This document shows, in pieces, positions 40,232 through 60,711 of a stretch of 64,000 nt of DNA. A model generated the notes under the pieces. The model had not been told where the DNA came from. It searched no databases and was given only the letters and a program-made list of their open reading frames with translations. This DNA is from Phallusia mammillata (Eukaryota), in the NCBI GenBank assembly GCA_965637545.1, contig OZ281501.1:6200001-6264000 (forward strand), given 5' to 3'. The translations under genes and the position numbers were made by a program. Positions within the stretch are counted from its first letter, which is position 1. Every line of letters starts with the position of its first letter.

Positions 40232-43200
40232 ATGAATGACGATTTAAGTGACAAATTAGATTCACTGTTAAGTGTGTGGTCATCAAAAATAAAAAGTGGA
40301 GATGATACAACACTGGAGAAAGCTAAAGAAGAATTAATACAAGCATGCAATTCTATTGTTTCACTACCATACAGCATTGTAAAACAAGGTAAATGTTTAA
40401 GGCAACTACCTATTTTGTCTATTGAAGGCGTTATCTCCAGTGTTCACCCATTCAGTCATTTACCCAATACTTGGCTATAATGGTTGTTTACTTGAATTGT
40501 CCTCTTTCTACTATGTAACATTGTGTTGTTTTACAATTGGCGCATCCTGATCTGGGTGTCTTAGCTGTTACTCATCAATTTAATTTGCATATTTAAATTG
40601 GTATTGATTTTTAGTTACTTTAAGGTTTTCATGAGAAAATTTTGAATGCTGTTTACTTTTTATGTGTATAATTGTATTATTTTTAGATGTTATTACAATG
40701 TTGTACATGATTGGCTGCAATCTTTCAAGAAACAATCTTGTGCCACTGGCAGTAAAAGTGTTTGAATGTGCTGTGGAAAGCTTCAATATCATCAGTGCAA
40801 GGAAAAGTGGAATGTTGGATACCGACGAAGTTATTTTAATGAAAATATTCTATGAGACTGGAGAGTGCTGGAAAAAGTTGCAAAACGCAAGTGGATTTTT
40901 CTATGTGTGTTTGTCACAAAGTTTTGTTCCACCAGAAAAGCTGTACTAGCACTTTCTATTAGTGCTAAATTGTATATATAGTTGGTGACATGTTATCATC
41001 ATCTGCTTTAATTCTTTAAAATCTTGTTTCATTAGTGCTTAACACTGTGCTTACAGATCATTGGTAAACATTGTTTGCTATTTTAGGATGAGAGGGCTGC
41101 AGAAAGTCTTCAATCCAGTTTAAATCTATCATTCCATTGTGGTGACTTATCATTTGAGAGAAAGGTATATTGGCTGATTTTGAACTCCACAATTATATAG
41201 CATGCCTGTCAGCAATACTTTGTGAAATTTTAACCGATAGATGTGTGATTATCAAAATAGTCATTGGCATAAAAAAATGTATTGTTTTTTTGCAGTTGTG
41301 TCTTAGTCTATCTGAGACTAAAATGAAGGTTGGAAGATACTCAGAAGCTGCTGTTGGTTATTTGCGAGCATTGACCATCTTAGATGATCTGTCGTATGTT
41401 GGCATAGAAAGTGCAGAGTAAGTTGTTAGCCATTTTTTTGGAAAAATAGAGTTGTAATTAAGAACAATATAACAAGTTACTTTATTTGCAATACCACAAT
41501 GTCTCTTTAAAGCTTGAATAGTGACTCATGGTTGTCCTTTTATGTACAAGTGCTTTGTGGAATTTGTGATACTTCGTTTCTATTCTTTTTTTAAACTGTG
41601 TTGAAAGCAGGATACTTTACAATTACACCTACAAAACTTATAATTTTAGCATATAATTTTATATATTTTCAGGGATCTTCAAGTAGAGAAGACCAGTATT
41701 CACAATCAGCTTGCTAGGGTTTATGTGGAATTAAAGTTGTACAATCAGGCTTTGGATCATGCTTTACTTGTTTACAAACACTGTGAAGGTGTAACAACCC
41801 CTGAGGTAACATTATTGTGTGTTTATTGTCAGTCAATCCCTAAATGTAAGTTGCTTGTTAGATACTAAAAATGATTGGCACACTGTATGACCATCTTGGG
41901 AATCCAGAATCAGCCCTGGAGTTTTACAAAAAGTGTTACAATGTTACAGAAAACAAAGGTTGGAAAAAATTGCAAATCAATTAATGCAACACTTTTAATT
42001 TAAACAAATTGCTCAAAATCCTTTTTATTTATCTGATATTGATTTCAGGGGCCAAGTTATCATCAGTTATCGAATGTATAGTTTGTGATTTGATTAAGCT
42101 TGAGAAACTTGATGAGGCTTTGGAATACATTAACAAGCAGTTAAAATGTGGAAGGTGAGCACAAACCATTTTTAGCTTATACATGTATATGTAACTAGTT
42201 TTCACTGGGCATTGTGATGTGCCAAAGCTTTGGTATCAATTCAAAACATTTTGCTATTTTATGAAGATTCAGTTGCAACAGTCTACTCAAAACAAAGATA
42301 AGAAAGCAACATAATTATTTTGTTGCTGTAACACTGCTGTTTTGTCTGTGGTAGCAGATATGTCTGATTTGGCCAAACTTTTCTAGCAAACCTACCAAAT
42401 GAATAAATTGGTCTGAATTTAGCACATACAGTACATCACTAGTTTTGCACCTTTGCAGTTGTTTTGTTTTGGATACCCAGGATATATATTGCTGAATTAT
42501 CTTATGAACCAAATCAAGTTTTAAGCAAGCTTGTTTAAAATGATGTAAAAACCTGCCTTCTACTTTACTTTTTACTAAGTTAGTAATATTTTTCATTGTT
42601 TTTGCACTTAGTGACAACAAAGATGAGTTCACTATTTTCTCTGCTGCATTGCACAAGGGGGATGTCTTCATGTTGACTGATGACGCAGAAGCAGCAAGAA
42701 GCCAGTTTAACTTTGCTATGAAATTGAGTCAAACATTTCCTGATGAGTACTTCTGTGAATGCAATGCTTTATGCAAGGTATGTTGCTTAGTGTAAGTTGA
42801 CGACAGCAGATTCCAAAATGTTCTCCTACGTTATTGTCTGTAAAAGTGCATGTGTGCTAGTGATGCATTTGTGCATTTTAAAATTTTTTGGTCAATTTAC
42901 TTATTAGATAGCTGACAGTTTTTCGGAAGAGGGACGTTACATGCATGCCCTATATGAGTGTGAACGTGCCCTAGCATTGGCACGCAAAAGTAAATCTCCT
43001 GATCTGCTTGATAAAATGCAACTGCAAGTGGCAATTCACAGTCAGCATTCAACATCTGAAAAAGTAAAAAAAAGTTCCTCAAGGTACCAGTTCTTGGCAT
43101 GTTGTGATTAACCTGTTTCAATTTTAAAGGAACTTTCTTCGGCTTTAGCTACTTTATGCGCGAATGTAAATCAACAATGTGGGGATTTTGAAATGCTCAA

Positions 43201-46200
43201 TGCCCAAGAACTTAAAGTGCCAACAGAGCAGATTGATAAGTTTTCATCTTGCTGTAAGGCAATACAGGTATGAATCAATTTAAATGTTTGTCTGTTAGTT
43301 TCGCATAACTTGTGAAACGTTTTTTTCATTGGAATATTAGGTTAGCTTTGAAAACATCATAATGCACCCTTTTTCTAAGGACCAGATAATGGTTTTTATG
43401 TCAGAAAAAAGTGTTACAAAAAATGTACTGATAAACGATATAACATGTAGCATAACTGCAGATTAAAATTTTCTAAACTTTTATATTTCCAATTTCAGGT
43501 ATTATTAAAATGCTATTGATTTGCATTGTTTAGGTGATTTTACATAGATTGCACCAACCAACAGCAGCATGTGTGATTGCAGAATGGTTAAATCAGTGCA
43601 TTGTGACTAACACTTGGACCACATATATACCAAATGTTACAGGTTGCTTATAAAACTATTTGTCTGTATTGGTTCTTTGTTTGTAAATCATTGTTTTACA
43701 TTTTTATGCAGATTTACTCTCTGGCAAAGAAATGAAGGATTTTAACTTTGAACATTACCTGTATCCAACGAGAGAAAATTGTACTGTCGTTTTTACCTGC
43801 TGCAGATATGGTAAGAGAGTTACTTTGAATTTGGTGAAAAGCCGAGATAGCAGCCTCAAACTTTGAAACTTGTTTGTCCTGTTTCAACTTGGCTACATTC
43901 ACTATTAGTTTCAATTACCCCTGATAGGTTACTAAATTTTAGTCAACGAATAAATCCTGTGAAACACATTTTCTCAGTTTTTTTGTTACTGCATGATTAA
44001 TTCTACCAATAAGGTTATCTGTCGTTTGGTGATGATGTCCTATATGATTTTATGGCAATATTTTTTTTATCACTTTAAGAAAATATTTCTTAGTGATTTG
44101 TTTCAGAGCAAATACAGAACAACATGTCACTAACCTTTATACCCATATAAGAACAGCACAAAAATTTGTTTCTTGTTTTCTTGAAAATAGTGATTTTTTT
44201 CTTAGACATTCTCACTAATATTTTGCACAATGGAAATGCCAGAAGTTTTCTGATGTCAGATCGTGTGATCAATATAAAGAAGACAATTGTCAGAATAAAA
44301 GCTCTACTCGAAGTTTTACAACCACAAAATGACAAAAAGTATTCCATGTTCTACCAGACAGAACAAAGGTGAGGCAATTTTCTTCATTTAAATAATAATA
44401 ACCGACAAACACTTGGTAAGTGTGATTCCAGTGCCTTTTTGGTTTATGCCCGTTTGTGACAACTACAAGATGCTGTGAGGTTTGGCATTCTGTGTCAACA
44501 GACTGTACCAAAACTGGGCAATACTGCCTGTATGGCCAATGTCTTTTTCATGAGCTGCACTGATGAGACGGAATAGATAAATGGAAACAGTGAACTGTCT
44601 ACATCTAATATATCATTGCATTGGCACAAAAAGTTGGCCACAAATCTACCTACCACACTCAAAAAATATTTCTGTTACTGCCTTAATGCCCTTTTTTGAC
44701 ATTTTTTGTTGATACTTGATCTCTGACGGTTGGGTTTGAAAGAAGTGTATCTGTTCAAACGATGACATAAAGACAGTTAAACTGCAACTTGTCGCATAAC
44801 TTGGTTAATTGCAATAAATCGCTAAGTGGATATGCGGTTAAATGGATTCGTTTCGATTTAAAATTCATTTTTTGTTACGTACAAGCAAGATTGTTTTTAT
44901 AGAAACCTCCCTCAAGAGAGTACGAACAAAACTAAAACCGTTCCTCAAATTCAAAAGGAAGACGGTGCAGGAGACCAAATTCGAACATCCACTTCTAAAT
45001 CGCTTCCAACAACGGAAGAAGCTGGGGATCAAGGTAAAAATAAAAGACTATGTTTTTACCGGAGGCAGACGTTTTTTTTTTATTCATTTTGTCATTAGGC
45101 CTATCCACAGAATAGGTCTTATTCAAAGCCTGAAACCAATCAAAACAAATATTACCGAGTGTGGAGTCACACTCGCATTAAACCCGTTTTTTTAACTGAA
45201 GACCGAACCCAGGCCGGAAAGTTCCACCCGACTTACAACTTTGTGCAGTAAGGACAGAAACATGACAAGAACTGGCCAATTAGAAATAGGAAGACTGCTT
45301 TTACATTTTTTTCAGTCGGTAGTTCCGGCATTTTATTCATAATATTTTCTGAAATTTGCTTGCGTGAGAATTATCGCTCGCATTTTTTTGTTTTCAATTT
45401 TTTGTTGTAGAGATGGGGCCTGATGCAGCATTAAAGGAGCTCTTTGTTTTATTGATAAAACCCCTCGACGTAAATAAAGTTGAAACGGGGTCTTCAATAT
45501 GTATCATGGCCGACGACTTTCTCGCGGAGGTGACATTTTTATTTCCTAGTGTTGAATAAATGATGGAGAAAATAATTGCAAGCGAAACCCATACATCAAG
45601 AATTGGTCGAATGTTAATGAGGACCAGCGCCACTATTGTTGCTCAAAGCATAGGTTTGAAATTAATGTAAACAAGTTAACGTTGCAGAACGAGAAGTAAT
45701 CCATTTTAATTCTATTTAAATAAAAGACTGATAGTGCCTGCAAGGTTGAAATCTTATCTTTTGCAACGAATCGGTTCAGAAATACAAGTTTTGCGTTTCC
45801 TAAAGTCAGATTTGCTTACATGAATAAACTTTCGCACTAATCTATTGATACGTCATGTCATAATACAGTAAACATGATCGGTCATATTTAACACTTTAAC
45901 ATTTTATCGTATAGGTTCCTTTTGACCAGTTGATTGATACCTCAAGTCAAAAACCGCTGGGAGAAACATTTCATATTTTCACAACTCCATGCTTTCTTGC
46001 ATTGAACAACAAGTAGGCTAATAGCGATATGTAATATTTTAAGTGTTTTTTAAAGATTGTTTGACATTTTGGAGGTCAGTATATTATGTGTCAATCCATC
46101 TATCTAGCTAACTGTTATTTGTAATTGCAGCAAATGTAACGACCATCCAAAATCGCATGGAAAGTCTAGTGGAAGTATTCGGTATGTGAAAAAGAACACA

Positions 46201-49200
46201 TATATCATTATAGATCAGTTGAAGTGCATGCTTGGATACATTGTTGAAACTGTTAGATCTGCCTTTTTAACCCATTTTCTTATCAACTCTTTACAACTGA
46301 TTCCTCAAATCTATGCACCCTTGACATTGATGTAACAACTGTGCCAATTTTTAACCCGTTTTGCAGACGTAAAACAAATGCGAATTGACATTTTTCAAAA
46401 GAACTAAGTGTATCAAACTTGTGTTGTAAATGTTATGTAACTAGATTGCAACACTTTTCGGCTAACTAATTTTTACCTACATTTTTTGGTGGAACCCTAT
46501 ACCCCCTTCAGACACATTAACCCCTGCGGCTGTTGTGATAAAGAGTGATATCATATAGATTACTTTAGTATCCAGTATCACTTACACCAGGACTTCCCAA
46601 ACTGGGAGTCGCGTAACAAACTTGAGGGGTCGCAGAGAGCTTCACCATTTTACGCAAAGTATACTCCATATTAAACTATTCTACGTTTCAGTCGTTTAAT
46701 TCGAAACACAGTTGTTTAAACCGGTACGATTTCGCAAAAAAACATTATTTTTGACTGAACTGTAGATTCTTCGTAAATAAATCGGTTTATGACGTCATAT
46801 GCCAATAAAAAAATTCGAGAAAAATTTAAGTCATTGTACAACAGCATAACATTGGCGGTCTGCTTGCTATTCTAACCCACATCCTAAAGATTTTGCATTG
46901 TCTTCCAGTGAACAGAAACTTGCTGAAACATTTCACAAGCCATCAGAGTTGTTCTCACTACAAACCATCGGCATCGCCAAAGACCTTTCCGGTTTAGTGA
47001 CGTCATCAGCCACGGGCGTGAGTGTGATGACGTCACCGCGATACGTCACTCCGCACAAACGCGTAAGCAGGACTGCTTAGTTGTTACGTGTGAGCAAATA
47101 CTTAATATTGTTTTGCAAAAAGGTGCCGTTTCCTCTCAAGACATCTGTTATCGGAGGTCCTGTTATGCCTGCCGAACTAAAATATGAAAATACCGTTTGG
47201 AAGCCAAAAAAACGCATGACGGCGGCCGTTAAAGAATGTAACAAAGTAGGTTACGATATTTTGTCGAATTTAAGATACTGCACGGGCCTGGTAATAAAAA
47301 AATGCTTTGCAGCCCATAACTTGAAAATCATGGCGTAGCCTATACTCTACTAACAATTAAATAACCGCCCTTAATTATACATTTTGCCGTTTGGTTATTT
47401 TCGGCATCTTGGCAAATGTTTTTGAAGTTGCTCAGAAAATAACTAGGTTAGACCTAATTTTGCTGCGCAGATTGCCGAGTATTTGAACGTAGACGCTATG
47501 ACTGGAGAAGAAGCGACCAAAGACAAGTTTTTGTCCGAATTTTCTGAAGTCACGTTAATGCATGTGACAACTTATGCTGACCTATCAAAAGGTTATGACA
47601 TTTTTATGCTATTTCTTGATTTATGTAACTAACTTGGAAACTTATGAAGGCAGAATCAAAGAGTTGTTTCAAATAAACATGTTTATAAAGCCTAATTTCT
47701 CAAGATAATTTTGTCTGTTTTGTTTCAGCCTTTGACAACAAACCCCTATTTTACCGTACGAAAAGATGAAAATATTCTGATTTACGTAAAAGGTCTTGTC
47801 TGAATTAGTTTCAATTGTTCTCAAATCACAAAATTTTGCTCCTTATGTGAGCTTTTTGGAACCACAGTTTGGCGGCCACTGGATTATACCTGGTCCAGAT
47901 CCAATGTATAACTTCATAATAAAATGAAAACAGTTTTTAAAGCACAAAAGATTTTTGTAGATGCGAAACATTTTTCACAGGTGTTTTGGCATTCAAGCCT
48001 AATAGTTTTCCCGCTGAGGACTCGCCCTACTCCCCCTTGAGCTATCTGGTAACACTTCAAGACTTCATTGAAAGAAAACCCAGTAACTTACAACTTATGG
48101 TTATCTCATCTGGTCACGGTTGGACGAACACGGATGTAAAGTTGCCGCAAATTTTGTTAACCGCAGGTACGTGTGTTTTTTACTTTGTTATTTATGGATA
48201 TAAAATTGAGTTACTTATTATAGTTATTATTAGAATCACCAAAAATGCAATTCATTGTATCGAACCTGACAAATAGGCATTAAAAATTATTAAAACAATG
48301 GCACACAAAATGAAAACCACGAAACGATGATATGATGAAACAAAATATTTGAAAATTATTTTTCATCTACGTACAGCAAAACATCTAATTCAACGTTGTA
48401 TTTTATGGTGTTTACTTTCAATATGACTCGCTTGAAAAATGCTCTTACATCTCGTTAAAATGGCGCCCTTCCATTATACTGTGAAATAGAGGAGTTTTTC
48501 ATTTAAAAGTAAACAAAAAATGTTTTTTGACGTGGAAAAAACTTAAAAGGCAACCAATAAAGTTGGTTAAATCTAATCTTCAACAGGCTCGGTTATTGAA
48601 ATTAGGAAGTGTCCAGCAACAGTTGGAACACGAACACATCTGTAATACAGTGTTTTGCATGCTAACTGAATTGATCAGACAATGCACATTACAAATCACA
48701 GAAACTTTGTTAGTGGGCATGGTTTAACTTGGCACAGAAGTTTTCATAATGCCACGTATGGTGTAAAATCTCAATTGAAAATGCGTTCACTCACACCAAT
48801 GTGCATTCACGTAAGTAAACGACAAATCAAAAACGCGACTATGCAGAACAATGCAGTGGATTTTAAGCGATAAACACTGGCAACGCCACCGCCAATTACA
48901 CTGTTGTAACGTCCTGTTAATACGTTTACAGCGACTACAGTTGAATAACCAGTAGCATGCATGGTATCGCACATTTTGCTTTCTTCAATGCTACCACAAG
49001 CCTGTACTTCGCTCCCTACTCCCTCACACTGGCTTTCAGATACAGTAATTGTTTTGCGAAAACAAAAACGGTGTCGTATTTTCACACGGATACATGAGGA
49101 ACAGTCCGTCCAACTAGACCAGGGAGCCCATCGAGCCAGGACGCAATACGTGTCAGTACAAGTTTCGCTATCTAGGCGCCACTGGCGTCCTAAGCAAGGC

Positions 49201-52200
49201 GGGTGCAGGCATCGACGTGTTGTAAACTTAACACACGCCGATGCACACTGGGTACCAACTGTCGCCCAATCGTTCCAAAGACCCTGGGATTTTACTGGAC
49301 AGTAACCCCACTCGTCAGACCGGTATTCATTAGTTAACTCCGATACTGTGGCGCACCAGTATGTGCTTATTGGGAGGCGGCGTGTTGGCGTTGGTTCATT
49401 GGTGCATGCGTGGTATGTGACACTGTTATATACGAACGGAAAAATACAAGGCGAAAAGGCTGGTCGATGTTGAGCAGTGGACGTAGCGACCATGATAGGG
49501 AAACTTCCTAAATCAGGACAAGGTGGTACGTTGCAATAAGCAATTGTTGTTGTTCGCCACCGTTCATTGGTGATACAAAACGGGCGTGGTCTTTTACCTC
49601 CTGGATTTCGGCAGCCCGCTTGAGAAAAATCGAGGTCCGGGTGATCGTTGCTTATGGTGTGATACTGGTCGTAGTTGTTCCAGCGTTTGCAAGCGGCTGT
49701 TCCGTGGTAAGCTGGGTTATTGCTATTAAACTCACGTCCACGTGTGCGTGCATCGTAACATGTACGCTGTTTGTCGCATTCAAAATTATTGCAGAAACCA
49801 CCCTCTTTTTCGTGGTCTCCAATACAGGGTGGGTAGCGACAAATCCGCCGGAGAACAGTTGTCCCACGTCCGCAAACGCTACTGCATTTCCCGACACTGG
49901 TCCAGGCGCTCCATGTTCCTATTTGCTGTGTTGCGCATGTAGAGAATTTAAACTCTTCGCTTGTAATCCGAGCATAAGCACAAAAATGGTCGTGTTCCGA
50001 ATCCGGACTTTTCTGACATGAATGAACCGTCTTGCCGCGTAACTTGAATGGAAAAATACACTCACCGCCATTTAGGGTATAAATAGGTTCAACCAGCTGA
50101 CATCTAGGTACATCGCAGACTTTTAATCCGACTGGAGAGTTGTTTTTTCGTTTAGCATAGCACACTGGGAGCGTAGAGTCTTCAGGAATTGGATTTCTAC
50201 AGTAGTTGTGGTTTCTATCGCCCAGTACATCCTTTCTGCTCCAATCACGGAACGTATGAGCTAGTCGTGGTGAAGCAAAAACTGTTGTCCATTTCTCGCA
50301 TACCAAGCCGTCTATAAATTTCGACATTGTGCCTCTGTACGCTGTTGAGTCGCTACCCATACACTCAGGACATGGATGCGTATTGCATTGGCCTCGGAAT
50401 GTTATCTCGTCGCCAGGATAGGCCGAGCCACATGGAGGATAACGGCAATGCTGGCGATATTTGATTTTTCCCCCACCGCACGCCTCACTGCAGCCATTTG
50501 CCCCTCTGATAGCAGTTATCGGTGAAAACGTCCCTCTATAAGCTCGCGGGCAAATACCCCATCTAGTGTCCGTTGCCCGTTGCGGACTTTGGTCCGAGTT
50601 TCCCAATGTGGCGCACACAGCAAATCTAAAAGTGTGAGTTCCCTGTACGTTTTCGAACGAAATGTCTTCTTCGATGCACTTTTGGTACGTTTTGCCTAAG
50701 CTTATAAACGGAAACACACATGGTCTGTCATTATCTGGGCCTCCAACGGTCCTAACCTCGCCTGGAAGAAGAGGGCAACGCATAATATCACAATACATCC
50801 ACCTCAAATCTGTGTCCACAAAGCACCACGGCGCCACACGAAAACCAAACGGGCTTGGGTTTCGGCAATACGAATGTACAAGATCTAACCCTGCACCCTT
50901 AGCGGCGTAAAAATGATATTTGCTATCCTTGTTTCGCCAGTCAATACACGTATCACCTCCCAGAGTACGACTCACTGTTCCTATGTACGCATGCCCTTCC
51001 CCGTAAAAACAATCGACGTTTTCCCCCATAGTTACCTTCCAGGTACATCTGTGAGTGTTGCATGACCCTTCATATTTCAACTTTGACCCTTCACACAACG
51101 GTATCAGACACTCTCGAATGTACATCCACTGGCCACCGTCACACATTTTACTGCAAGTCGTGGTCTTATTCCAAGCCGTCCACTTGCCTTGGTATATAGA
51201 TGGACATCTAGCCCAAGTTTTAGGGTTCTCGTCGTTGAAGTTCTCATCATGTGGGCAATAGTAAACTCCACTACGAGGCACACAGTTGAAATAATACTCC
51301 CCTAGGAATTGGTAAGGAAAATGACACGGTTTTACCACCTGTATTTTCCCTTCCTCTGGAATTGTGTACGAAATGCCACGCATGTGAACATCGTTGCAAT
51401 GCGGAACTTCGCAGTATGAAGTAGCCATTTCAGTTGATACGAAGCACCAGGGAAGTTTTTCTGCTCCCAAAGGATTGCGGCAATAGCTACCTTCTAACTC
51501 GGCGCGTAGTGATGGTTTAAAATGGGTGTTATGCGTTTCAAATGATTTCCACGGCAAACAAGTTACTCCTCCTAGCGCCACGGAGACATTGCCGCGGTAT
51601 GTTTTCCCGTTATCTTCAAGACATGTCTTGCAAGGCTGAGTGTTACAGACTGGGTGATGGCCTTTATCTTGCTCTTCGTTACACGGTGGGTGCAAGCACG
51701 TACGAGTCCTCATAAATTTTCCACCGCCACACACAGCACTGCACCTGCCATCCGACCACGATGACCAAGTCCCTATTGTTGCTGTTGGACAAATAGCAAA
51801 TATCCCCGATCTAAAGCCGTTCCTAAGCGCCGCAAACGACGAACCTCGTAGGTTTTTCGAGACATCGTTGGAAATAGCGCAGTAACGAAACTTATTGTCA
51901 CCAAAAGAGTTAAATGGTGTGCACGCTTCGTGAGACCCACGGTCCGCCCCGACAAAGGGAAAAATACACGTCTTTGCAGGTACAAGCACGTTCACAGTGT
52001 CTTTAGATATCGCCCACAATTCTCCCGGTTGAGTGGGGCACCTGGGTATGTCACAATATGCCCATTGCACGCTGTTATGCTTAATAACGTAACACCACGG
52101 TATGCGATGAACTCCTGGACTGGGGTTACGACAGTGGTTTTCACGAAGTCTTGGAAAACCTGTTGGTAAAAAACGGTTGCTATGGTGTGAGCCGTCGTCA

Positions 52201-55200
52201 TCCCAACGAATGCAATTCGCGCCAGTGACTGTGGATGAAATACTGCCATCATAAGTAAGTCCAGTGCCAACGAAGCAGGTATCGCTGCCTGGTTGTTTTT
52301 GAAAGCACGGATGTGTGTTACAACGTTCGCTTTTGTCCGTTCTGACAGCCGTTCCCCCGCATGGGGCCAACAAACATGTGCGAAAGTAGATCTTGTATCC
52401 ACCACCACATTTACGGCTGCAGTCCCCTTCATATTTCCAATCCGTCCACCGGCCTCTATAATACATAGGACAGTAAGCGAACCCTTCTATAGACTCCATC
52501 TCGCACTGCTCTCTGCCCTCGCTTTTATCATCAAGCAAAGTACAGGCGTCAAACCAGAATGCCCGGTAACGGAATGGAAACTCGCACCCGTATGAAGCTC
52601 TACTATTTGTCGAAAAGCGTGGAATAGTATACCCAATACCCTCGCCGGTTAGGTTAGTCTCGCAGCTTGGTAAATCGCAAAACATACGCACTGGTGGGTC
52701 CTCCTTATTTCTGTAGCAGTAAGGCTGCGCAAATTCACTCCGTGGGTTACGACAATAGTTGCTTTCTAGCTCTGGATACTGAACGCTTGTTACCCCTGGG
52801 TGAGCGTGTGGTGTATGTACGTCCCACCGTTGACATACCGTGCCATCATTGGCAAAATTAGTTGTACCGCGATAATTGTTTCCTTTGCCGTAGAAGCACT
52901 CCAGGCACGGTTTAGTATTGCAGCTTTTTCCCATTTTACGGTTGATTCCGTGACACAAGGGCATGCGACATACACGCGTAAGCACAAAGTGCCCTCCACC
53001 ACAGGAACGGCTACAGTGACTTGCCTTTTTCCAGGTACCCCATTTACCTCGAAACGCATCAAGGCAGTAGCCCCATTTTGTGTGTTTGTCAAAGTCGTGG
53101 GTAAGTGAGCACCATGCCCTGTTTCGTCTGTGATCAGTAATACACTGGTCGTGACTCTGTCCGTCAACGATAAAAGGAAAATGGCATTTGCCAATGGCTT
53201 TATCTGTCAGTAAAGCCATTCGGTTATCCGCCTGAAATTGAACTGAGTTGCCTTCAATGGTTAAAATCTCGTCGCTTGTACACGGCTGGATGTTGCACTT
53301 CTCACCCTTCTGTGGGCCTTCGGTGCTGCCCGAGCAGGGAGCAAAGAGGCAGAATCTTCGTTTGTACACAACTCCACCACCGCATGGCTTATCGCAGGTT
53401 GATGGCCCAATCCATCCAGACATTGTACCTCGTTGGGCCATTGGGCAAACACCCCATTCTTCTGGATTCTTATCATAGTTAGGTGAAGTGGGACAGACGT
53501 GCCTACCGTCGGGTAGCGCAAAACATCCCCATGATTCATGGTGGTTACGAATATAAGGGAATATGCAATTTTTACCTACTACGGGGCCTCCTTCAACCGT
53601 TACCATTTCTGCCTCTAAAGTACTGGTAGCAGCAGAAACTTCACAAATGGACCGCACTTCTTTATCAGTCCCACTGTTATATTCCACCCATTCGGATTTT
53701 TCTGTTAAAACGCGAACAACTGGACTTCTGCCTACGGTTTTCCAATTTTCTACCTGCGCGACGCTCTCCAAATGCAGTCGTTTTTGTGTGCCAGCTTCTA
53801 ACAATACACCGTACGTATAATCACATGTCCACTGCTGGTTCTTACTAAATGCATCACATGGTAACAGTTTTAAACTTTCCTGGACATTTTGATTTTCGTC
53901 AAGTACAGCGCTTAAACAACGCAGATACTTAACGCTTCTAAACATGTTTGGTTTCAATCTCTGCCATTTCCAAGCTTCGTTTTCGATTGAACAACTTTCT
54001 TTAAGTTCAGGAATATACTGATCGTTATCATGTACAGCTACCAAGCAAAACCCCACATCTTTTCCAGCTAATTTATGGTAAATTACAAACTCATCAGTAG
54101 CTAACACCATTGTTGCAAGCAAAGCACAAATCCCTTTGTAAACAAACATTTTGTCTCATAGCTATTTTCTTGACTGTGTAATAAAACAAGATACTGTCAT
54201 TACAGATGAACAGTTTCTGTCTGTGACAAACAAACGCTTTGTCGTGAAATAACTGTGCATTGTTTTATGAAGGTGTCGCCTGTGTAGTATACTTGAGATG
54301 GCCAGTTCCAGATTGCGTGGCCGAAAAGTTCTTCTTCCACTTTTACATGAACTTGCAGAAGTCGTGCAAAGTTTCCAGAGCTTTGTTTAATGCCAAGGAA
54401 GCTACAAGAGAGAGGTGGGTTTGCTTCTAATTGTACAATAACAATTGTAAGTATTTTGGTGTTGAAATGATATTTCCCTTGTTTTAATAATGTAGTGTTT
54501 CACAAACTAGTACGCATATTAGTGGTAGTACTGTAAGGTCTTTCAGCACAAGAAGTGTAGCCTATTTGTTGATTTTCTGGTTATGAGTTATAATAATATT
54601 AGTGCAATATTTTCTAAAATTTACACCACTTTTATTGCATGCTTTTGAGTTTTTGGGGGATATTAGTGGTACACCAAAACGGTTTAAAACCTACGAATGG
54701 TAGGCGAGTAAAAACTCCATTATTTGATTAATCGCCAGTTATGTTCCAGCAGTACTTACTGAAGAGTTTGCTTAAATGTTCTAGGTGTTGGGTTTATTTG
54801 CATTTTTAAACTCATTTAAACCAGTTTGTCAACTTTCTAAAACCTGTAATTAGTATTAATAGTTTAATGTTTTTGGTTAGAGTTGTCTGTGTTGTAACTA
54901 AACCAACGATTTTACACTTTTTTGTGGCAGATACCCAGATTACACACTTTGGAACGCTTTCACAGCTACCGGCAGTGACGTTACAATCGATCTTTCTCGA
55001 ATTCGCCAGTCTCAGTTACAGAACCGTTTAAATGACGTCGAATCACCTGTACTTGACACGCCACCTTTTATTGATGAAGGTACGAAGCAAAACTCAAATG
55101 AAAAATGACAGTTGATGCCGCTTCTAAGTCTAAAACCTAGTTAATGAAAAACATGACTTTCTTTCGTACATACGCTTTTACTTAATTAAGGTAAGATCAA

Positions 55201-58200
55201 CACAAATTCATAGCCGGTCACGACAAACTAGTACGCCAGGCCCATTAAAAGGGGTCATACCGAATCAGCCAGTCATCAAGCATTCCCATATGGCAAGGTA
55301 CGGACTAGAAAAATATACCCGGGAATCTTGGAAAGACTTCTGTCGTCGGTTCGAATCCCACGGCAGGATATATTTTAGTCTGTGCTATATCGGAATGCTT
55401 GGTGACCGGCTGATTGGGTATAACGCCTTCAAATCTTCAAAGTAATTTATTGTGTTTTTCTAGTGGTAAGCGACGAAGAACGGTTTCATCTCGTCCAAGA
55501 AGCTTTGTCACGCTTGGGTGGTTCTGTGTCAGGTGATAGTGACGTCATATCGTTTTTACTGGGTCTGGTGGAGGAGGCCACAGAAAGGCTGACCAGCGAT
55601 GATAATGTGGATAGACCAATTGTGATTCTCCCCAAAGCTGTAGAAAATGTCGATGGTATGTTATCTGCTGCCAATGCAGTTTGCATGAAGTGTATTTTAA
55701 TGCACATTTTGGTGCCATTGGTTTTGTATCTGATAGCAACGTTGGGTAAAAATGTAAATGCACTGCAAACTTCTAATAACCAACTTAACCAGGTACCAAA
55801 TAAACGAAACAAAAGAATAAAACTTCAATCTCTAGACATTGTTTGTTATGTGTGGTCTATTATAATTGTAATATTTTGTTCAGTTTTTGATTTGTTAAGC
55901 AGTCTAATTAATTTTCTGTTTACCATTAAAAGTTTTATTAAAGTAATTCACCTGTATAACAGGTACGGTTGATTTGCTTTCGCTCATGGGATTTGATCTG
56001 CAACCGATCGACAGCAAAAGTCTACCTCCGACCTCAGATAGATCACATGGCGCAGACAAGATGATAGTGTTTCCTCACTGGAATCAAGACTCCCTGCTTC
56101 TGCCCTGTCACCAGGCTCTCATTGGCCTTCACGGTGAGACGATGCGTCGCTTTCTAGTCTTCTCAAAGCTGTGCGCTTGCGCAATTGCTAGTAGACTCTC
56201 AGCGCAAAAAAAAACTATACTGCGCTGAAATTAATCCACCACACAGGGTACACACTGCATGTGCCCATAACATTGCAATATAGTGTACTCAGACACATTA
56301 CTAAAATGATTTTAATGTATGCTAAGATATATGAAACGTTAGAGGGAACATCGTGTAGGATAGTCCAAGAACAAAGAGATTTTTTTGGCAGCAAAGCATT
56401 TGTTACTAACCTGGTACCAAGCATCGTATGCTCTTACTTAATGTTTGGGTTTGTTTGGATCAGTGGTTCTCAACCTGTGGTACGCGTACCACTAGACAGC
56501 CTTTAAACTTGCTAACTGAGCCGGTTTCAGCAATACGCAAGCCTGGCAAAGAAAAATGGGCCCATGTCTTGGTCTATCCATTCACACGGGGTTTTGGTGG
56601 TACGCAGCCATAGAAACAGTCGCCAGGTGGTACGCGATCAGTATAGGGTAGAGAAGTACTGGTTTGATGACCCTCTCAACTTAACGAGCATGCATAATTT
56701 TGTGGTTAACTAGGCCTTAGCTTGTCAGGAAACAGCTTGCATAAATGTCGTTTTTTTGTTTAGAGTTGTGTCAGAATCCCGAATGTCTCCGCATGATGGC
56801 GCTAATGCTTCCACTGCAACAAGAGCTTCTTTCCTATCTGATTGACTTGGTAATTATTTTGACTTGGTACAATTAGTGCTTAAAAAATGTGCAGCATGTT
56901 TTTATTGGTAAATCCTATTTCAGCAAATACTTTATTTTTGTTTAGTGGGTTTATGAATAATGCCAAATTTTCAAATATTTTCCAATTTTCCAGCGCAAAA
57001 CGTCTTTTGCTGCGTTAACACAGAATATTGGACTTGCACAATATTTTGGCCAAGTCCGAGTCCAATTGCGACGAAAAATTTGTTTTGTTTTAAAACATGA
57101 ATTACAATTTGCCACTTCGTATAGGTGCAACCAAAACAAACCATACTAAAGGAACACATTTAATTTTAAGATTGTTGATGTTTAAGAAATAAATGAAATC
57201 CAATGACTTGGTTTAAATGCTGATTTCATGATTTACAACTCTTCAAATCGTCATTTTGCTTGTTATATTAAAAAAAGCTTGGCTTAAGCTTTCATTGAAC
57301 TTTTTAGTTGTCTATTGTCCATCATACACCAGAAGTGCAACTTCGTACAACAGACGCCTCTGTGCGAGAATTGTGGCAGCAAAGAGCGATTCGTCGCTCC
57401 CTAAAGGAAATTGGAATTAGTAATGTTATGGACCTGGTGTTTTTTTCAAGGAGTTTAATGTCAAGGTAAAGTAAACAGATCGCTTGATTAAATAACAACA
57501 AAGCGATCGACTATGGTCAAATTGTTTCTTACGTTTAAGTCATTTAGTTTAATTTTTCTAAATTGTGTTTTCAGTTCTCACATATTTCAAGTTAAACAAA
57601 TACGTCCCTGTTCAAACTATATGCTTTTCATTTTTTATGTTTATTTAGATTTTTTTTTTGGTTATTTACTACGCATTTTACGAATAAATTTAATGGAAAT
57701 GATTTTGTGCACTTTGTCTTTGGCGATTTTATATGTTATAATGTTGTCGTATTATCTTTTTATTTGTGAATTTTTTTCTCAAGAAAACTTGTTGATTTAA
57801 AAAATATGATTTTTTTTACAAAATTATTGCTTATGTTTAGATCATGTCTTTTGGCAAGCCTCCAGTTTCTGACGTCATTCTCGTTGCATCGCGACCAAAG
57901 CGTTCTTGAACAATTGGACGTCACTTCATTGGGGAAAATACCCCAAACTGAAAGCGCAGAGGATCCCATCAAATTGGATTCGCTAAATCTTGCCCTTCTA
58001 CCAAGAAACGAGGTGACAAATGAAATATTTTTTGCTACCTTCTCTGGTATATATTTCAAAGATTTTGTTTTCTATTTTGATTTTAACTTTTAAATCTTTG
58101 TTTTTCCCTAATCTTACTAAGAAGAATAACGGCAAGTAATTTTTGCCCCTGGAAACGTATTGGTTAATGTTTGATATACCATTGTTTCTCAACCTTTTAT

Positions 58201-59780
58201 TGATTACATACTACCTGAAGACGTTTTTATCGCTGCGTGGGCCGCCACCTAAACTTTGTTTGTTCTAGAAATAGCCTAAACGTTATTTTCATGACTATGT
58301 TGGCATATTTCTGTAGCCACCAACGTTAACAATTCCAAAAAGTCGTACAAAACACGGGTTGTGCCCAAAACCACGGCGAATCAGTTGGAAAATCACAAAA
58401 CATACCTCACGGCAGACTCACATTAAGCTAATTTCCAATAGGTGAAGCAATGAGCACTTTTACCCATTTAAAACGACACATCTTCAAAAATGCTTGCAGT
58501 TAGGGTCGGGGTAAGGTATTAGCATTCAAAATTCAATACAAGGAGCAATATAAATTAGTTTCTATTAACTTTTTAAAACTTTACATCCTAACTCTACCCC
58601 TCTTCACCTGCTAAATAAATAAATAATTTAGCTCTGCGCCACCTATCCAGAATTGTCTGAATGTGGGTCTGCCGTGAGGAATGATGTCAGTAGCTAATCA
58701 GTTGGGCACTTGAGTTGCAATTCTTGATCTGATTTGAATTAAATATAGCAGAAAGCTACTCGCGTACCACCTGAATTTTGAGAACCACTGCCTTAAACAG
58801 TACATGTTTGGTCACGTGACAGGTTGCTGTCAAATCGTCATGGATGGGCGATGACAGTTTTGAGAAGGAGAAAAAGGAAAGAAAGAAACTCGCAGACGAC
58901 ATACGGAAGTTATCAGAGAAATATTCACAAGCTCTCGAGCACGCCAAGTGGTGGCATCGTGATGTGCGAGTCCCACAGCAAGTATGTCTGTTATTATTGA
59001 TAAATTGTTTTATATTTGTTGCGTACCGAATCGCTTTTACTGTGTTAAATGCTGCCCGTAACATTCGCAAGCGATTCTAGCTGCATAAAGGTCGCACGGG
59101 CGCAATATTGTGCTCAGAAAGAAAAGAAATGGAATCGCTTGCTAACACTGCATTAGATTTGTTTAGTTATCCACACCTTATGTAAAATCCAAACGTTTCC
59201 GAGGGTCGTAAGGTTGTATACAACCTTTTTTCAATGGGCCGCATTTTGCCAACATGTGCACAACCCCGCTTTAGTGGTTTGGCAGTAATAGTTCAATAGA
59301 AATATACACACTTTAATATAGCATGGTTCATTCGACACAGTAACAGGTGGATGACTTGTCTGTGAATCAAACACGCACTTGGATAAAGACCGAAAGTTGC
59401 TTTAAAAAAGTGTGTAAATGCTACATAAAAACCATTTACTTCCATAAAAGAACGTTGAACTCCAGTAAATCTGCTGTAATGTCCCTTTAATGTTTTCTGT
59501 GCAGGCTGGCAACAGTTTAGTATCGCAAGACAGTGCATTGAATGGCGGCGACCAACCGACACACCCACGAAAGGTTAAAGTTCAATCTGGTGCCACGCCC
59601 TCTTGCAACCGACTCCTATTGGACGATAACAAGCAGCAGTCAGGTCTACTAGAGACGCTAAGTCGGCGTAGTGAAGCCCGAATCATTTTACAGAGGCGAT
59701 GCGATGACCTGAATCGACGCCATACCGCCTGCATACGGGACACTTACCTCCGATATGCTGAACAAAAGTCTGTACAGTAA
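40232..59780 (+). CDS. TPR-repeat + CHAT-domain protein, TTC28-like (~30 exons, ~1395 aa)
   Basis: Phase-consistent exons: 40232-40388, 40687-40886, 41087-41164, 41296-41393, 41673-41805, 41862-41958, 42049-42154, 42612-42777, 42908-43063, 43130-43267, 43534-43642, 43712-43810, 44206-44368, 44903-45033, 45411-45529, 45915-46012, 46131-46181, 46909-47062, 47123-47245, 47471-47591, 47981-48166, 54273-54414, 54931-55079, 55464-55655, 55963-56133, 56764-56849, 57308-57465, 57841-58012, 58823-58981, 59505-59780. The N-terminal third has TPR-like helices. CHAT motifs appear in order: ALKELFVLLIKPL, VPFDQL, SVIGGPVMP, IAEYL...GEEATKDKFL, LQLMVISS, LLTAG|VACVVYLRWPVPD, FFFHFYMNL, LWNAFTATGSDV. Individual minor exons are less certain. 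Confidence 0.78.
44553..44606 (+). ncRNA. Degenerate hammerhead-ribozyme-like motif (stems decayed)
   Basis: AGCTGCA-CTGATGA-GACggaatagataaatg-GAAA-CAGtgaaCTG-TC-TACATCT. Canonical core; stem I pairs 5/7 and stem II is broken. Sequence-related to 61733-61784. Confidence 0.45.
46588..46650. mobile_element. Left-end fragment of the 19580-family MITE
   Basis: CAGGACTTCCCAAACTGGGAGTCGCGTAACAAACTTGAGGGGTCGCAGAGAGCT closely matches the sequence from 19580; no right TIR seen. Confidence 0.7.
48807..54149 (-). CDS. Intronless 1780-aa secreted, probably GPI-anchored mosaic protein: SP - ricin-B-like - FN2-TSP1 - (FN2-TSP1-kringle)x6 - FN2-TSP1-TSP1 - hydrophobic tail
   Basis: Single 5343-nt ORF with a hydrophobic N-terminus, 8 FN2-like CxFPF/Y modules, 9 TSP1-like modules (most with WxxW), 6 kringles (CRNP...P[W/Y/V/F]C) and a C-terminal hydrophobic segment TALFCIVAFLICRLLT with no cytoplasmic tail. 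No protease domain. Confidence 0.93.
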   Translation of the reverse strand: MFVYKGICALLATMVLATDEFVIYHKLAGKDVGFCLVAVHDNDQYIPELKESCSIENEAWKWQRLKPNMFRSVKYLRCLSAVLDENQNVQESLKLLPCDAFSKNQQWTCDYTYGVLLEAGTQKRLHLESVAQVENWKTVGRSPVVRVLTEKSEWVEYNSGTDKEVRSICEVSAATSTLEAEMVTVEGGPVVGKNCIFPYIRNHHESWGCFALPDGRHVCPTSPNYDKNPEEWGVCPMAQRGTMSGWIGPSTCDKPCGGGVVYKRRFCLFAPCSGSTEGPQKGEKCNIQPCTSDEILTIEGNSVQFQADNRMALLTDKAIGKCHFPFIVDGQSHDQCITDHRRNRAWCSLTHDFDKHTKWGYCLDAFRGKWGTWKKASHCSRSCGGGHFVLTRVCRMPLCHGINRKMGKSCNTKPCLECFYGKGNNYRGTTNFANDGTVCQRWDVHTPHAHPGVTSVQYPELESNYCRNPRSEFAQPYCYRNKEDPPVRMFCDLPSCETNLTGEGIGYTIPRFSTNSRASYGCEFPFRYRAFWFDACTLLDDKSEGREQCEMESIEGFAYCPMYYRGRWTDWKYEGDCSRKCGGGYKIYFRTCLLAPCGGTAVRTDKSERCNTHPCFQKQPGSDTCFVGTGLTYDGSISSTVTGANCIRWDDDGSHHSNRFLPTGFPRLRENHCRNPSPGVHRIPWCYVIKHNSVQWAYCDIPRCPTQPGELWAISKDTVNVLVPAKTCIFPFVGADRGSHEACTPFNSFGDNKFRYCAISNDVSKNLRGSSFAALRNGFRSGIFAICPTATIGTWSSWSDGRCSAVCGGGKFMRTRTCLHPPCNEEQDKGHHPVCNTQPCKTCLEDNGKTYRGNVSVALGGVTCLPWKSFETHNTHFKPSLRAELEGSYCRNPLGAEKLPWCFVSTEMATSYCEVPHCNDVHMRGISYTIPEEGKIQVVKPCHFPYQFLGEYYFNCVPRSGVYYCPHDENFNDENPKTWARCPSIYQGKWTAWNKTTTCSKMCDGGQWMYIRECLIPLCEGSKLKYEGSCNTHRCTWKVTMGENVDCFYGEGHAYIGTVSRTLGGDTCIDWRNKDSKYHFYAAKGAGLDLVHSYCRNPSPFGFRVAPWCFVDTDLRWMYCDIMRCPLLPGEVRTVGGPDNDRPCVFPFISLGKTYQKCIEEDISFENVQGTHTFRFAVCATLGNSDQSPQRATDTRWGICPRAYRGTFSPITAIRGANGCSEACGGGKIKYRQHCRYPPCGSAYPGDEITFRGQCNTHPCPECMGSDSTAYRGTMSKFIDGLVCEKWTTVFASPRLAHTFRDWSRKDVLGDRNHNYCRNPIPEDSTLPVCYAKRKNNSPVGLKVCDVPRCQLVEPIYTLNGGECIFPFKLRGKTVHSCQKSPDSEHDHFCAYARITSEEFKFSTCATQQIGTWSAWTSVGKCSSVCGRGTTVLRRICRYPPCIGDHEKEGGFCNNFECDKQRTCYDARTRGREFNSNNPAYHGTAACKRWNNYDQYHTISNDHPDLDFSQAGCRNPGGKRPRPFCITNERWRTTTIAYCNVPPCPDLGSFPIMVATSTAQHRPAFSPCIFPFVYNSVTYHACTNEPTPTRRLPISTYWCATVSELTNEYRSDEWGYCPVKSQGLWNDWATVGTQCASACVKFTTRRCLHPPCLGRQWRLDSETCTDTYCVLARWAPWSSWTDCSSCIRVKIRHRFCFRKTITVSESQCEGVGSEVQACGSIEESKMCDTMHATGYSTVVAVNVLTGRYNSVIGGGVASVYRLKSTALFCIVAFLICRLLT
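55245..55432. mobile_element. Imperfect foldback (inverted-repeat) element in a TPR-CHAT intron
   Basis: The arm at about 55251-55327 is the approximate reverse complement of about 55353-55427 (ATACCGAATCAGCCAGTCATCAAGCATTCC vs GGAATGCTTGGTGACCGGCTGATTGGGTAT). Confidence 0.7.
56461..56661. mobile_element. hAT-like MITE, degenerate right end
   Basis: Left CAGTGGTTCTCAACCT, right AGGGTAGAGAAGTACTG, internal GGTACGCG motifs. Confidence 0.6.
58180..58790. mobile_element. hAT-like element apparently containing a second MITE
   Basis: Ends CATTGTTTCTCAACCT / TTTGAGAACCACTG; no TSD confirmed. Confidence 0.5.
58405..58679. mobile_element. MITE with ~20-bp TIRs
   Basis: CCTCACGGCAGACTCACATT / AATGTGGGTCTGCCGTGAGG (one mismatch). 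Confidence 0.75.
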
Positions 59781-59813
59781 GACCTGTGTGTAAGGTTGAT
59801 ACTTTGGGTAGAG

Positions 59814-60106: not shown

Positions 60107-60711
60107 TTTTACCGACACTTTGCGTTTGAACTGTTGATTTCACTGAGTGTTCCAGTTTTTGGTACATTCACTTATAGATGGCGTGTGATTTTAAAAAAAC
60201 TTTGGCATCATACTAGATTACTAGAACTATCAACATTTGGGTATAGATATCTCTTGTATTTCCTAGATTCCTTTTTTAATGCACGCCGAATTGCGTAGTG
60301 TCATTTATCAGTAGTTAATCACAAAAAAAGCTTGAAAAAAATCGCCTTAATCGTCTGCTTTCAGTAGACCAAGGTAGTGCGCTGTGATAGTTGTTTAAAA
60401 ACACTGATTTCAGAAACCGCCTCTTTGGAAAATGCTGTCAAAACCCTATCTCCTATTAATATGTTCGGTTTCATTGTATTGGAGAACACTGTATTGTAGG
60501 CAACACGAGTTTCATACACAAAAAATGTATTTTACCAAAATTTTGCAATGTTTTGCACTTTTCACAACCAGCAAACACGCATATGTCTTGCCGTTTCATT
60601 GAATCAAGCTTTGCACTGTGGTTTGCTTTGTACGCAATATACGACTTCTCGCTATATGTGTGTTGTAAATCCAACATAAGTCATCCAGCATCCATTTTAC
60701 TATGTGAACAT

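Follow-up and report, generated by a model that had tools for sequence, protein, structure and literature searches.

A single-exon gene occupies an intron of a TPR-CHAT gene

The 64,000-nt stretch of Phallusia mammillata DNA considered here (the window; positions 6,200,001 to 6,264,000 of contig OZ281501.1, 38.7% G+C, zero N) carries on its plus strand a multi-exon TPR-CHAT gene, one intron of which houses, in antisense orientation, a 1780-codon gene without introns. This arrangement was proposed by a model from the sequence alone (hereafter the sequence-only reading), which took the nested gene to be a retroposed or intron-purged insertion. By tblastn, the host gene is colinear with an annotated Clavelina gene (1489 aa, TPR and CHAT domains), with LOC120339972 of Styela clava (1724 aa) and with LOC108950033 of Ciona. 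The features of the two genes, including the nested open reading frame (ORF) and coding sequence (CDS), are as follows.

40232..59780, plus strand: host TPR-CHAT gene, with the extent given by the sequence-only reading; homology begins at 40635 (Clavelina) or 42634 (Styela) and reaches 59777.
47471..47591, plus strand: host exon, from splice sites and homology.
47981..48166, plus strand: host exon before the intron, acceptor and donor read; homologous exons in Clavelina, Ciona, Styela and the tunicate contig L021.
48167..54272, plus strand: host intron, 6106 nt, GT..AG, phase 1 within a Gly codon of the CHAT domain.
54273..54414, plus strand: host exon after the intron, VACVVYLRWPVPD...FNAKEATRE, C-terminal part of CHAT; RNA contigs splice on to 54931.
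54931..55079, plus strand: host exon; joint from 54412/54414 to 54929/54931, GT..AG, in three RNA runs.
55464..55655, plus strand: host exon, used as a probe (alignment A1).
48807..54149, minus strand: nested single-exon CDS, an ORF of 1780 codons plus stop with an ATG start, 5343 nt.
54150..54272, minus strand: 5' flank, 123 nt from the nested ATG to the host exon.
48167..48806, minus strand: 3' flank, 640 nt, presumed 3' untranslated region (UTR).

The host exons that end at 48166 and start at 54273 are both in phase 1, as the sequence-only reading had placed them, and the genomic sequence and RNA contigs agree on this point. On the donor side, the exon closes with ...CCG CAA ATT TTG TTA ACC GCA G before gtacgt, and its translation reads ...GVLAFKPNSFP...LMVISSGHGW...QILLTAG; on the acceptor side, ttttatgaag precedes GT GTC GCC TGT GTA GTA TAC TTG AGA TGG CCA GTT CCA GAT. 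Public runs from the same organism were examined, the RNA-like ones all coming from one study and representing one independent source; four of them contain ~23% of the words of 54150-59800, as expected from spliced host exons. Run contigs were aligned to 49080-55079, with the upstream side of the junction being read from the loose ends of the contigs. Runs X1, X2 and X15 each yield one contig (3522, 2286 and 2857 nt, respectively) with the GT..AG splice from 54414 to 54931, and before 54271/54273 all three carry the 30 letters TGTAAAGTTGCCGCAAATTTTGTTAACCGC, which occur a single time in the window, at 48135-48164. The ambiguity of 2 nt arises because AG is common to the exon end and the intron end, and the canonical GT..AG junction is 48166/54273. 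From this point, the junction contigs extend over ~1.5 kb of mRNA on the upstream side and ~1.9 kb on the downstream side. In the DNA run X3, which may be the source of the assembly itself, the whole stretch is present unspliced. Since the contigs join 48166 to 54273, the two host halves form one transcript, which refutes the alternative that 40232-48166 and 54273-59780 are transcribed separately. In the runs examined, the host is cleanly spliced across the nested gene.

The intron does split the CHAT domain, in line with the initial proposal. The segment 54275-54427 alone matches positions 223-266 of the 289 in the Pfam CHAT profile (PF12770) with an E-value of 6.6e-6, above the cut-off, and the full CHAT match spans residues 849-1248 of the Styela host and 109-453 of the Ciona host, with the junction residue inside both. 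At 6106 nt, the intron was correctly described as several-fold longer than the others in the host, where the remaining exon gaps supported by homology measure 118-1091 nt, apart from a 2851-nt gap in which poorly conserved exons are probably concealed. The nested CDS lies wholly within the intron and makes up 88% of it, which bears out the claim that the minus-strand ORF almost fills it. No other ORF in the intron reaches 150 aa; the region 47000-55500 holds two of this size or more, the second of which begins outside the intron.

The nested gene encodes a conserved kringle-repeat protein

Pfam matches in the nested protein comprise six Kringle, five fn2 and one scored TSP_1 domain. By motif spacing, the N-terminal region consists of a signal-peptide-like start and a weak CysR/ricin-type head followed by FN2-TSP1-like domains, and the remainder of six FN2-TSP1-like-Kringle units, an FN2, a TSP1 and a hydrophobic C-terminal tail. 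The head scores weakly (CysR_MRC2_N, E-value 2e-4), although Ricin_B is above the cut-off in Clavelina. Orthologues carry the automatic NCBI name 'apolipoprotein(a)-like', and six kringles do recall kringle-repeat proteins; however, kringle proteases of the apolipoprotein(a)/plasminogen type have a trypsin-like domain after the kringles, and no Trypsin domain is found by Pfam in the nested protein. Members of the mannose-receptor family (MRC1, MRC2, PLA2R) share the order of an N-terminal ricin-type CysR domain and then FN2 with the nested head, but continue with tandem C-type lectin domains and a transmembrane helix, and Pfam detects zero lectin_C domains here. Thus, with neither a protease nor C-type lectin domains, the protein belongs to neither of these types.

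A search of 5.8 billion proteins returned full-length relatives from tunicates only, at 33-38% identity (33-40% across all the full-length tunicate orthologues compared), and the sixfold FN2-TSP1-like-Kringle unit is likewise found at full length only there. The relatives include 'apolipoprotein(a)-like' proteins of Ciona intestinalis and Styela clava, LOC143468464 of Clavelina lepadiformis and five ENA proteins. Across eight full-length orthologues, 121 of 131 Cys are invariant. Compared with Ciona and Clavelina, every repeat unit is most similar to the unit at the corresponding position, ahead of its neighbours. Together, these results establish the nested gene as one old conserved gene under constraint. 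An ESM Atlas search with two of the repeat units gave no usable match, and no paper on the protein was found in the literature; a link to the Botryllus 'Kringle-domain protein', a hyaline amoebocyte marker (PMC13635237), could not be made.

The intron is filled in Ciona and Clavelina

Synteny of the intron in related species, filled versus empty, had been suggested as a check on the insertion, and both states are found: the intron is filled in Ciona and Clavelina and empty in Styela (509 nt) and L021 (958 nt). In Ciona and Clavelina, an orthologue of the nested gene lies antisense in the same host intron, at the same Gly codon and in phase 1, and in all three species this codon precedes the motif V/I-x-C-V..WPVPD. 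The Ciona host protein reads LLYSG before the junction and IKCVVTNLWPVPD after it. The dimensions of the three filled introns are as follows.

Window: intron of 6106 nt; nested gene a 5343-nt single exon; 123 nt from ATG to host exon and 640 nt from stop to host exon.
Clavelina: intron of 5843 nt; nested gene a single exon of 1801 aa, antisense, with the gene span of 5406 nt equal to the CDS; 174 nt on the ATG side and 263 nt on the stop side.
Ciona: intron of 5928 nt; nested gene antisense in the CHAT gene; 150 nt on the ATG side and 494 nt on the stop side.

With the CDS subtracted, the filled introns measure 437-763 nt, the size of the empty ones. Because the nesting is common to Ciona, Clavelina and the window species, the split between Ciona and the aplousobranchs, dated to ~260-275 million years ago (clock of Delsuc et al. 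2018, PMC5899321), sets its minimum age. The arrangement is therefore old rather than recent, and would have been held for roughly 270 million years.

One Ciona assembly has the nested ORF broken into segments of 935 and 702 aa, with ~350 nt containing stops between them. This interruption (L002:12770-13175, GCA_018327825.2) includes a frame change and is annotated as an intron, giving a 1639-aa product, whereas a second Ciona record of 1788 aa has no interruption. A genuine short intron, a difference between lineages or a fault in the assembly could each account for it.

An empty intron and an intron-rich orthologue in Styela

The Styela host was reached by searching a profile of one host exon against 1.8 billion representatives, which yielded a styelid transcript (P0021) and from there the Styela clava gene LOC120339972. 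This gene has the same phase-1 intron, with ..LSAG before the junction and ASSVLHQLWNVPD after it, and a search of its 509 nt gave no match to the kringle gene. The Styela orthologue of the nested gene, XP_039263319.2 (1772 aa), is encoded on the same chromosome as the host but 3.4 Mb away, between CFAP43-like and RPL4-like genes, and its gene extends over 30 kb, in which at least 28 exons are matched separately. Searched against the window genome, the Styela protein is colinear with the nested gene over residues 18-1689 (1040 bits) and otherwise meets isolated single kringles; this reciprocal best match identifies the two genes as orthologues.

The sequence-only reading had also called for an intron-containing parental paralogue. 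An intron-rich version does exist, namely the Styela orthologue, but the genome of the window species contains no such paralogue. The 240 Mb of this genome (312 contigs, the window lying on contig 8 at 6.20-6.26 Mb) were searched in six frames with the window and Styela proteins, and neither a second nor a parental copy was detected, the matches being this locus and isolated domains. Candidates for an intron-containing paralogue were rejected, as they proved to be lone kringle, FN2 or TSP1 domains belonging to other genes. Nor was a parental locus of the Styela type recognisable: the RPL4-like matches are on contigs C3 and C5, away from the window, and have no relative of the nested gene next to them. 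The CFAP43_N family search gave zero matches anywhere, controls included, and is uninformative. The flanks of the Styela locus match none of the other loci examined.

A second empty intron is found in L021, a 43.7-kb tunicate contig from metagenome assemblies that carries the host gene and then a PMPCA-like gene. The exons flanking the intron (..HILLTAG before the junction, VGCVVYPRWPVPD after it) are 958 nt apart at the same position and phase, and the intron retains no remnant of the nested gene. L021 is the relative whose host protein most resembles that of the window.

Flanks and expression of the nested gene

The 123-nt 5' flank contains a pyrimidine tract followed by AG (54175-54174), a candidate acceptor for trans-splicing or for splicing within the 5' UTR. 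Such a tract with AG lies 24-60 nt upstream of the ATG in all three species (29 nt in Ciona, 60 nt in Clavelina). No AATAAA, ATTAAA or A-tract was found in the 640-nt 3' flank, and Rfam and tandem-repeat scans of 47000-55500 were empty.

Within the nested CDS, runs X1 and X2 gave four contigs only, of 156-244 nt and a depth of ~3, as compared with 11-22 for the host; they are strandless and might stem from pre-mRNA. No contigs from the RNA runs fall in the nested 5' flank, and the stretch compared with the contigs offers one control intron, of 516 nt. The four contigs are compatible alike with weak nested expression, pre-mRNA or non-overlapping expression of the two genes. Their scarcity in runs that express the host is the one hint bearing on the possible transcriptional interference or mutually exclusive expression put forward in the sequence-only reading. 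In Clavelina and Ciona, the nested orthologues are annotated genes.

Origin of the nested gene

We consider it probable that the nested gene began as a retroposed copy, which entered a small intron already present, took the place of its intron-rich parent and was then retained. In the ancestor of the window species, Ciona and Clavelina, the processed mRNA of a CysR-FN2-TSP1-Kringle gene of ~30 exons would have been copied back into DNA and inserted, antisense, into a small existing phase-1 intron of the TPR-CHAT gene, following which the intron-rich parent would have been lost and the retrocopy would have assumed its function. From then on, the host would splice an intron of ~6 kb consisting almost entirely of nested CDS, with the nested gene under purifying selection. 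Its transcription would start within ~120 nt of the host exon, or in or beyond that exon, and its 5' end may be made by spliced-leader trans-splicing or by a splice in the 5' UTR. The disappearance of ~30 introns, the new locus, the empty target site in the intron-rich lineage and the lack of a parental copy together constitute the signature of a replacement retrogene. The insertion originally proposed is thus supported by the empty introns of Styela and L021 and by the intron-rich Styela orthologue, with no molecular scars left.

Several observations weigh against this scenario or limit its reach. Neither a poly(A) tract nor a target-site duplication is recognisable in the 3' flank and at the intron ends, which leaves the passage through RNA inferred, as is the direct landing in this intron; decay of such scars would be expected after hundreds of millions of years. 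That the intron-rich state is ancestral rests on parsimony, because the family has no outgroup beyond tunicates, and the stolidobranchs are represented by one species, Styela clava. In a tree of the host protein (258 columns), L021 groups with the window species with weak support (89/92), a placement that, if true, implies a later loss of the gene from the intron; the tree with L021 outside the three filled species is not rejected (p 0.07 in the approximately unbiased test). Furthermore, six tunicate contigs carry an intronless relative with no host exons nearby. Four ENA contigs (L003-L006) carry uninterrupted ORFs of 1826-1869 aa that share 45-61% mutual identity and form a separate clade of the protein tree, and tblastn to an E-value of 5 found no host exons in the 10 kb to each side of them. 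A walk of 9 kb from L003 to L017 encountered a histone-fold exon and unnamed ORFs, but no host exons within 19 kb upstream. The intronless relative closest to the window protein (42% identity), a 1484-aa protein encoded at L024:6034-10485 (JGI24021J15306_10006539), is devoid of the CysR-FN2 head and has instead a Met of its own with a hydrophobic stretch at the start; here, no host exons were found in 6 kb upstream or 3.5 kb downstream. Such relatives suggest that the gene may have lost its introns on one occasion and become nested on another, or that it moved again.

The flanks of L003-L006 contain reverse-transcriptase and transposase ORFs, none of these contigs nor L024 lies at a CFAP43/RPL4 locus of the Styela type, and a host exon-profile search aimed at the L003-L006 contigs returned short contigs only. 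The un-nested contigs could come from outside the group of Ciona, Clavelina and the window species (for example, from pelagic thaliaceans), could have relocated secondarily or could have very swollen introns. As a separate observation, L004:23869-24044 and L006:22095-22270, from two species, share a 159-nt block of 82% identity, 6.6-8.4 kb downstream of the intronless gene; it is non-coding, with stops in all frames, and may represent either a repeat common to both or an element under conservation.

These relatives lend some substance to a less probable but serious alternative, a route in two steps, in which the gene would have become intronless at another locus, through retroposition or cDNA-mediated purging, and later entered the CHAT intron by DNA duplication or a second retroposition. 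The un-nested intronless genes, full-length with no host exons within 10-19 kb on L003-L006 and head-less on L024, would represent the intermediate state, and the empty intron of L021, which has the host protein most similar to that of the window, fits as well. However, transposon-swollen introns are possible given the reverse-transcriptase and transposase ORFs in the flanks, none of these contigs lies at the Styela-type CFAP43/RPL4 locus, and one event more is required than for direct insertion. We also regard as unlikely a history of repeated retro-copying of the ~5.5-kb mRNA, or of repeated moves of the intronless copy, which would be nested or free depending on the lineage and would each time replace the earlier copy.

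Tunicates have a high intron turnover, and with full-length relatives that are all tunicate there is no outgroup to set the polarity, so the reverse course also has to be weighed, namely that the nested intronless state is ancestral in tunicates and that the Styela lineage moved the gene out and gained ~30 introns. We judge this to be highly improbable: it demands ~30 gains in one gene, a relocation and a clean removal from the intron; L021 provides a second lineage in which the intron is empty; and retroposition is what the combination of full intron loss and a change of locus normally indicates. Hardly credible at all is the view that there is no real gene, the ORF being a decaying pseudogene or a chance frame, or that there is no single host, with 40232-48166 and 54273-59780 as separate units. 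The four short, low-depth RNA contigs within the CDS and the Ciona assembly with its ORF split by ~350 nt containing stops would agree with it, but the frame of 1780 codons (39% G+C) has stayed open in seven species or more, 121 Cys being invariant, and, for the host, the junction in the RNA contigs refutes it and annotated single genes cross the junction in Clavelina, Ciona and Styela.

Relation to known retrogenes and nested gene pairs

If a retrocopy did replace its parent here, the event is of a type already known, including in Ciona, and the locus adds an example rather than a principle. Orphan retrogenes, which arise by retroduplication followed by loss of the parent, have been described in human (Ciomborowska et al. 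2013) and in Ciona intestinalis and C. savignyi (Kim et al. 2014), as these studies are cited in PMC5408686. The nested gene resembles them in that it is functional, has no introns, occupies a new locus and keeps a constrained ORF, while a multi-exon form survives in another lineage only and the parent is gone, but it differs in the unusual size of its CDS (5.3 kb from ~30 exons), in its position inside an intron of another gene and in the absence of poly(A) or target-site scars. An intronic retrogene that disturbs the splicing of its host is KTI12 in TXNDC12 (Kaer et al. 2011, as cited in PMC5408686); it shares with the present case a single-exon retrocopy in a host intron and the possibility of transcriptional interference, whereas the host contigs observed here are cleanly spliced across the intron.

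Conserved nested pairs such as TIMP inside synapsin (PMC2825198) and LRRTM inside alpha-catenin (PMC3933685) likewise consist of a whole coding gene antisense in one host intron, kept across deep divergences. The tunicate pair, by contrast, is confined to part of the tunicates, and its intron is nearly full, with a slack of 123-174 nt on one side and 263-640 nt on the other. In addition, the empty intron and the pre-insertion gene structure both persist in Styela, which allows the origin to be read directly. What sets the locus apart is how large the presumed retrocopy is, how nearly it fills the intron, and that the states before and after both survive: a 509-nt intron and, elsewhere on the chromosome, a ~30-exon gene in Styela, and a ~6-kb intron, 88% full, in three other ascidian lineages. 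This makes the origin of the nested pair unusually readable. The pair suggests that a retrocopy can entirely supplant even a very long mosaic gene and remain functional for hundreds of millions of years. Ciona, an experimental model, offers a natural system in which to study whether an antisense gene that fills an intron interferes with splicing of the host, and how a retrocopy with ~120 nt upstream obtains a promoter.

The host gene and its neighbourhood

At position 54319, within the host exon 54273-54414, the X1 contig differs from the assembly, X2, X15 and the DNA run in having T instead of G, probably a polymorphism. By-eye alignment places a Cys at the site of the CHAT nucleophile in Styela and in the styelid transcript P0021 (LVVLLCGHGW), and other residues at the same site in the window (LMVISSGHGW), Clavelina (LAILSSGQQW), Ciona (LLVLSSIHTW) and L021 (LLVLAAGHGW). 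From these residues, the host protein may be catalytically dead outside stolidobranchs. After Styela, the next matches to the host CHAT region are bacterial TPR-CHAT proteins at 25-32% identity, with no other animal protein, in a search that covered proteins of up to ~2300 aa, a range below the TTC28 type (2481 aa).

Downstream of the host lies a Peptidase_M16 (PMPCA-like) gene, at 60680-63332 in the window, L001:3092-7057 in Clavelina, where it adjoins the TPR-CHAT gene as in the window, and L021:9722-12514. This adjacency represents local synteny within a group known for scrambled genomes.

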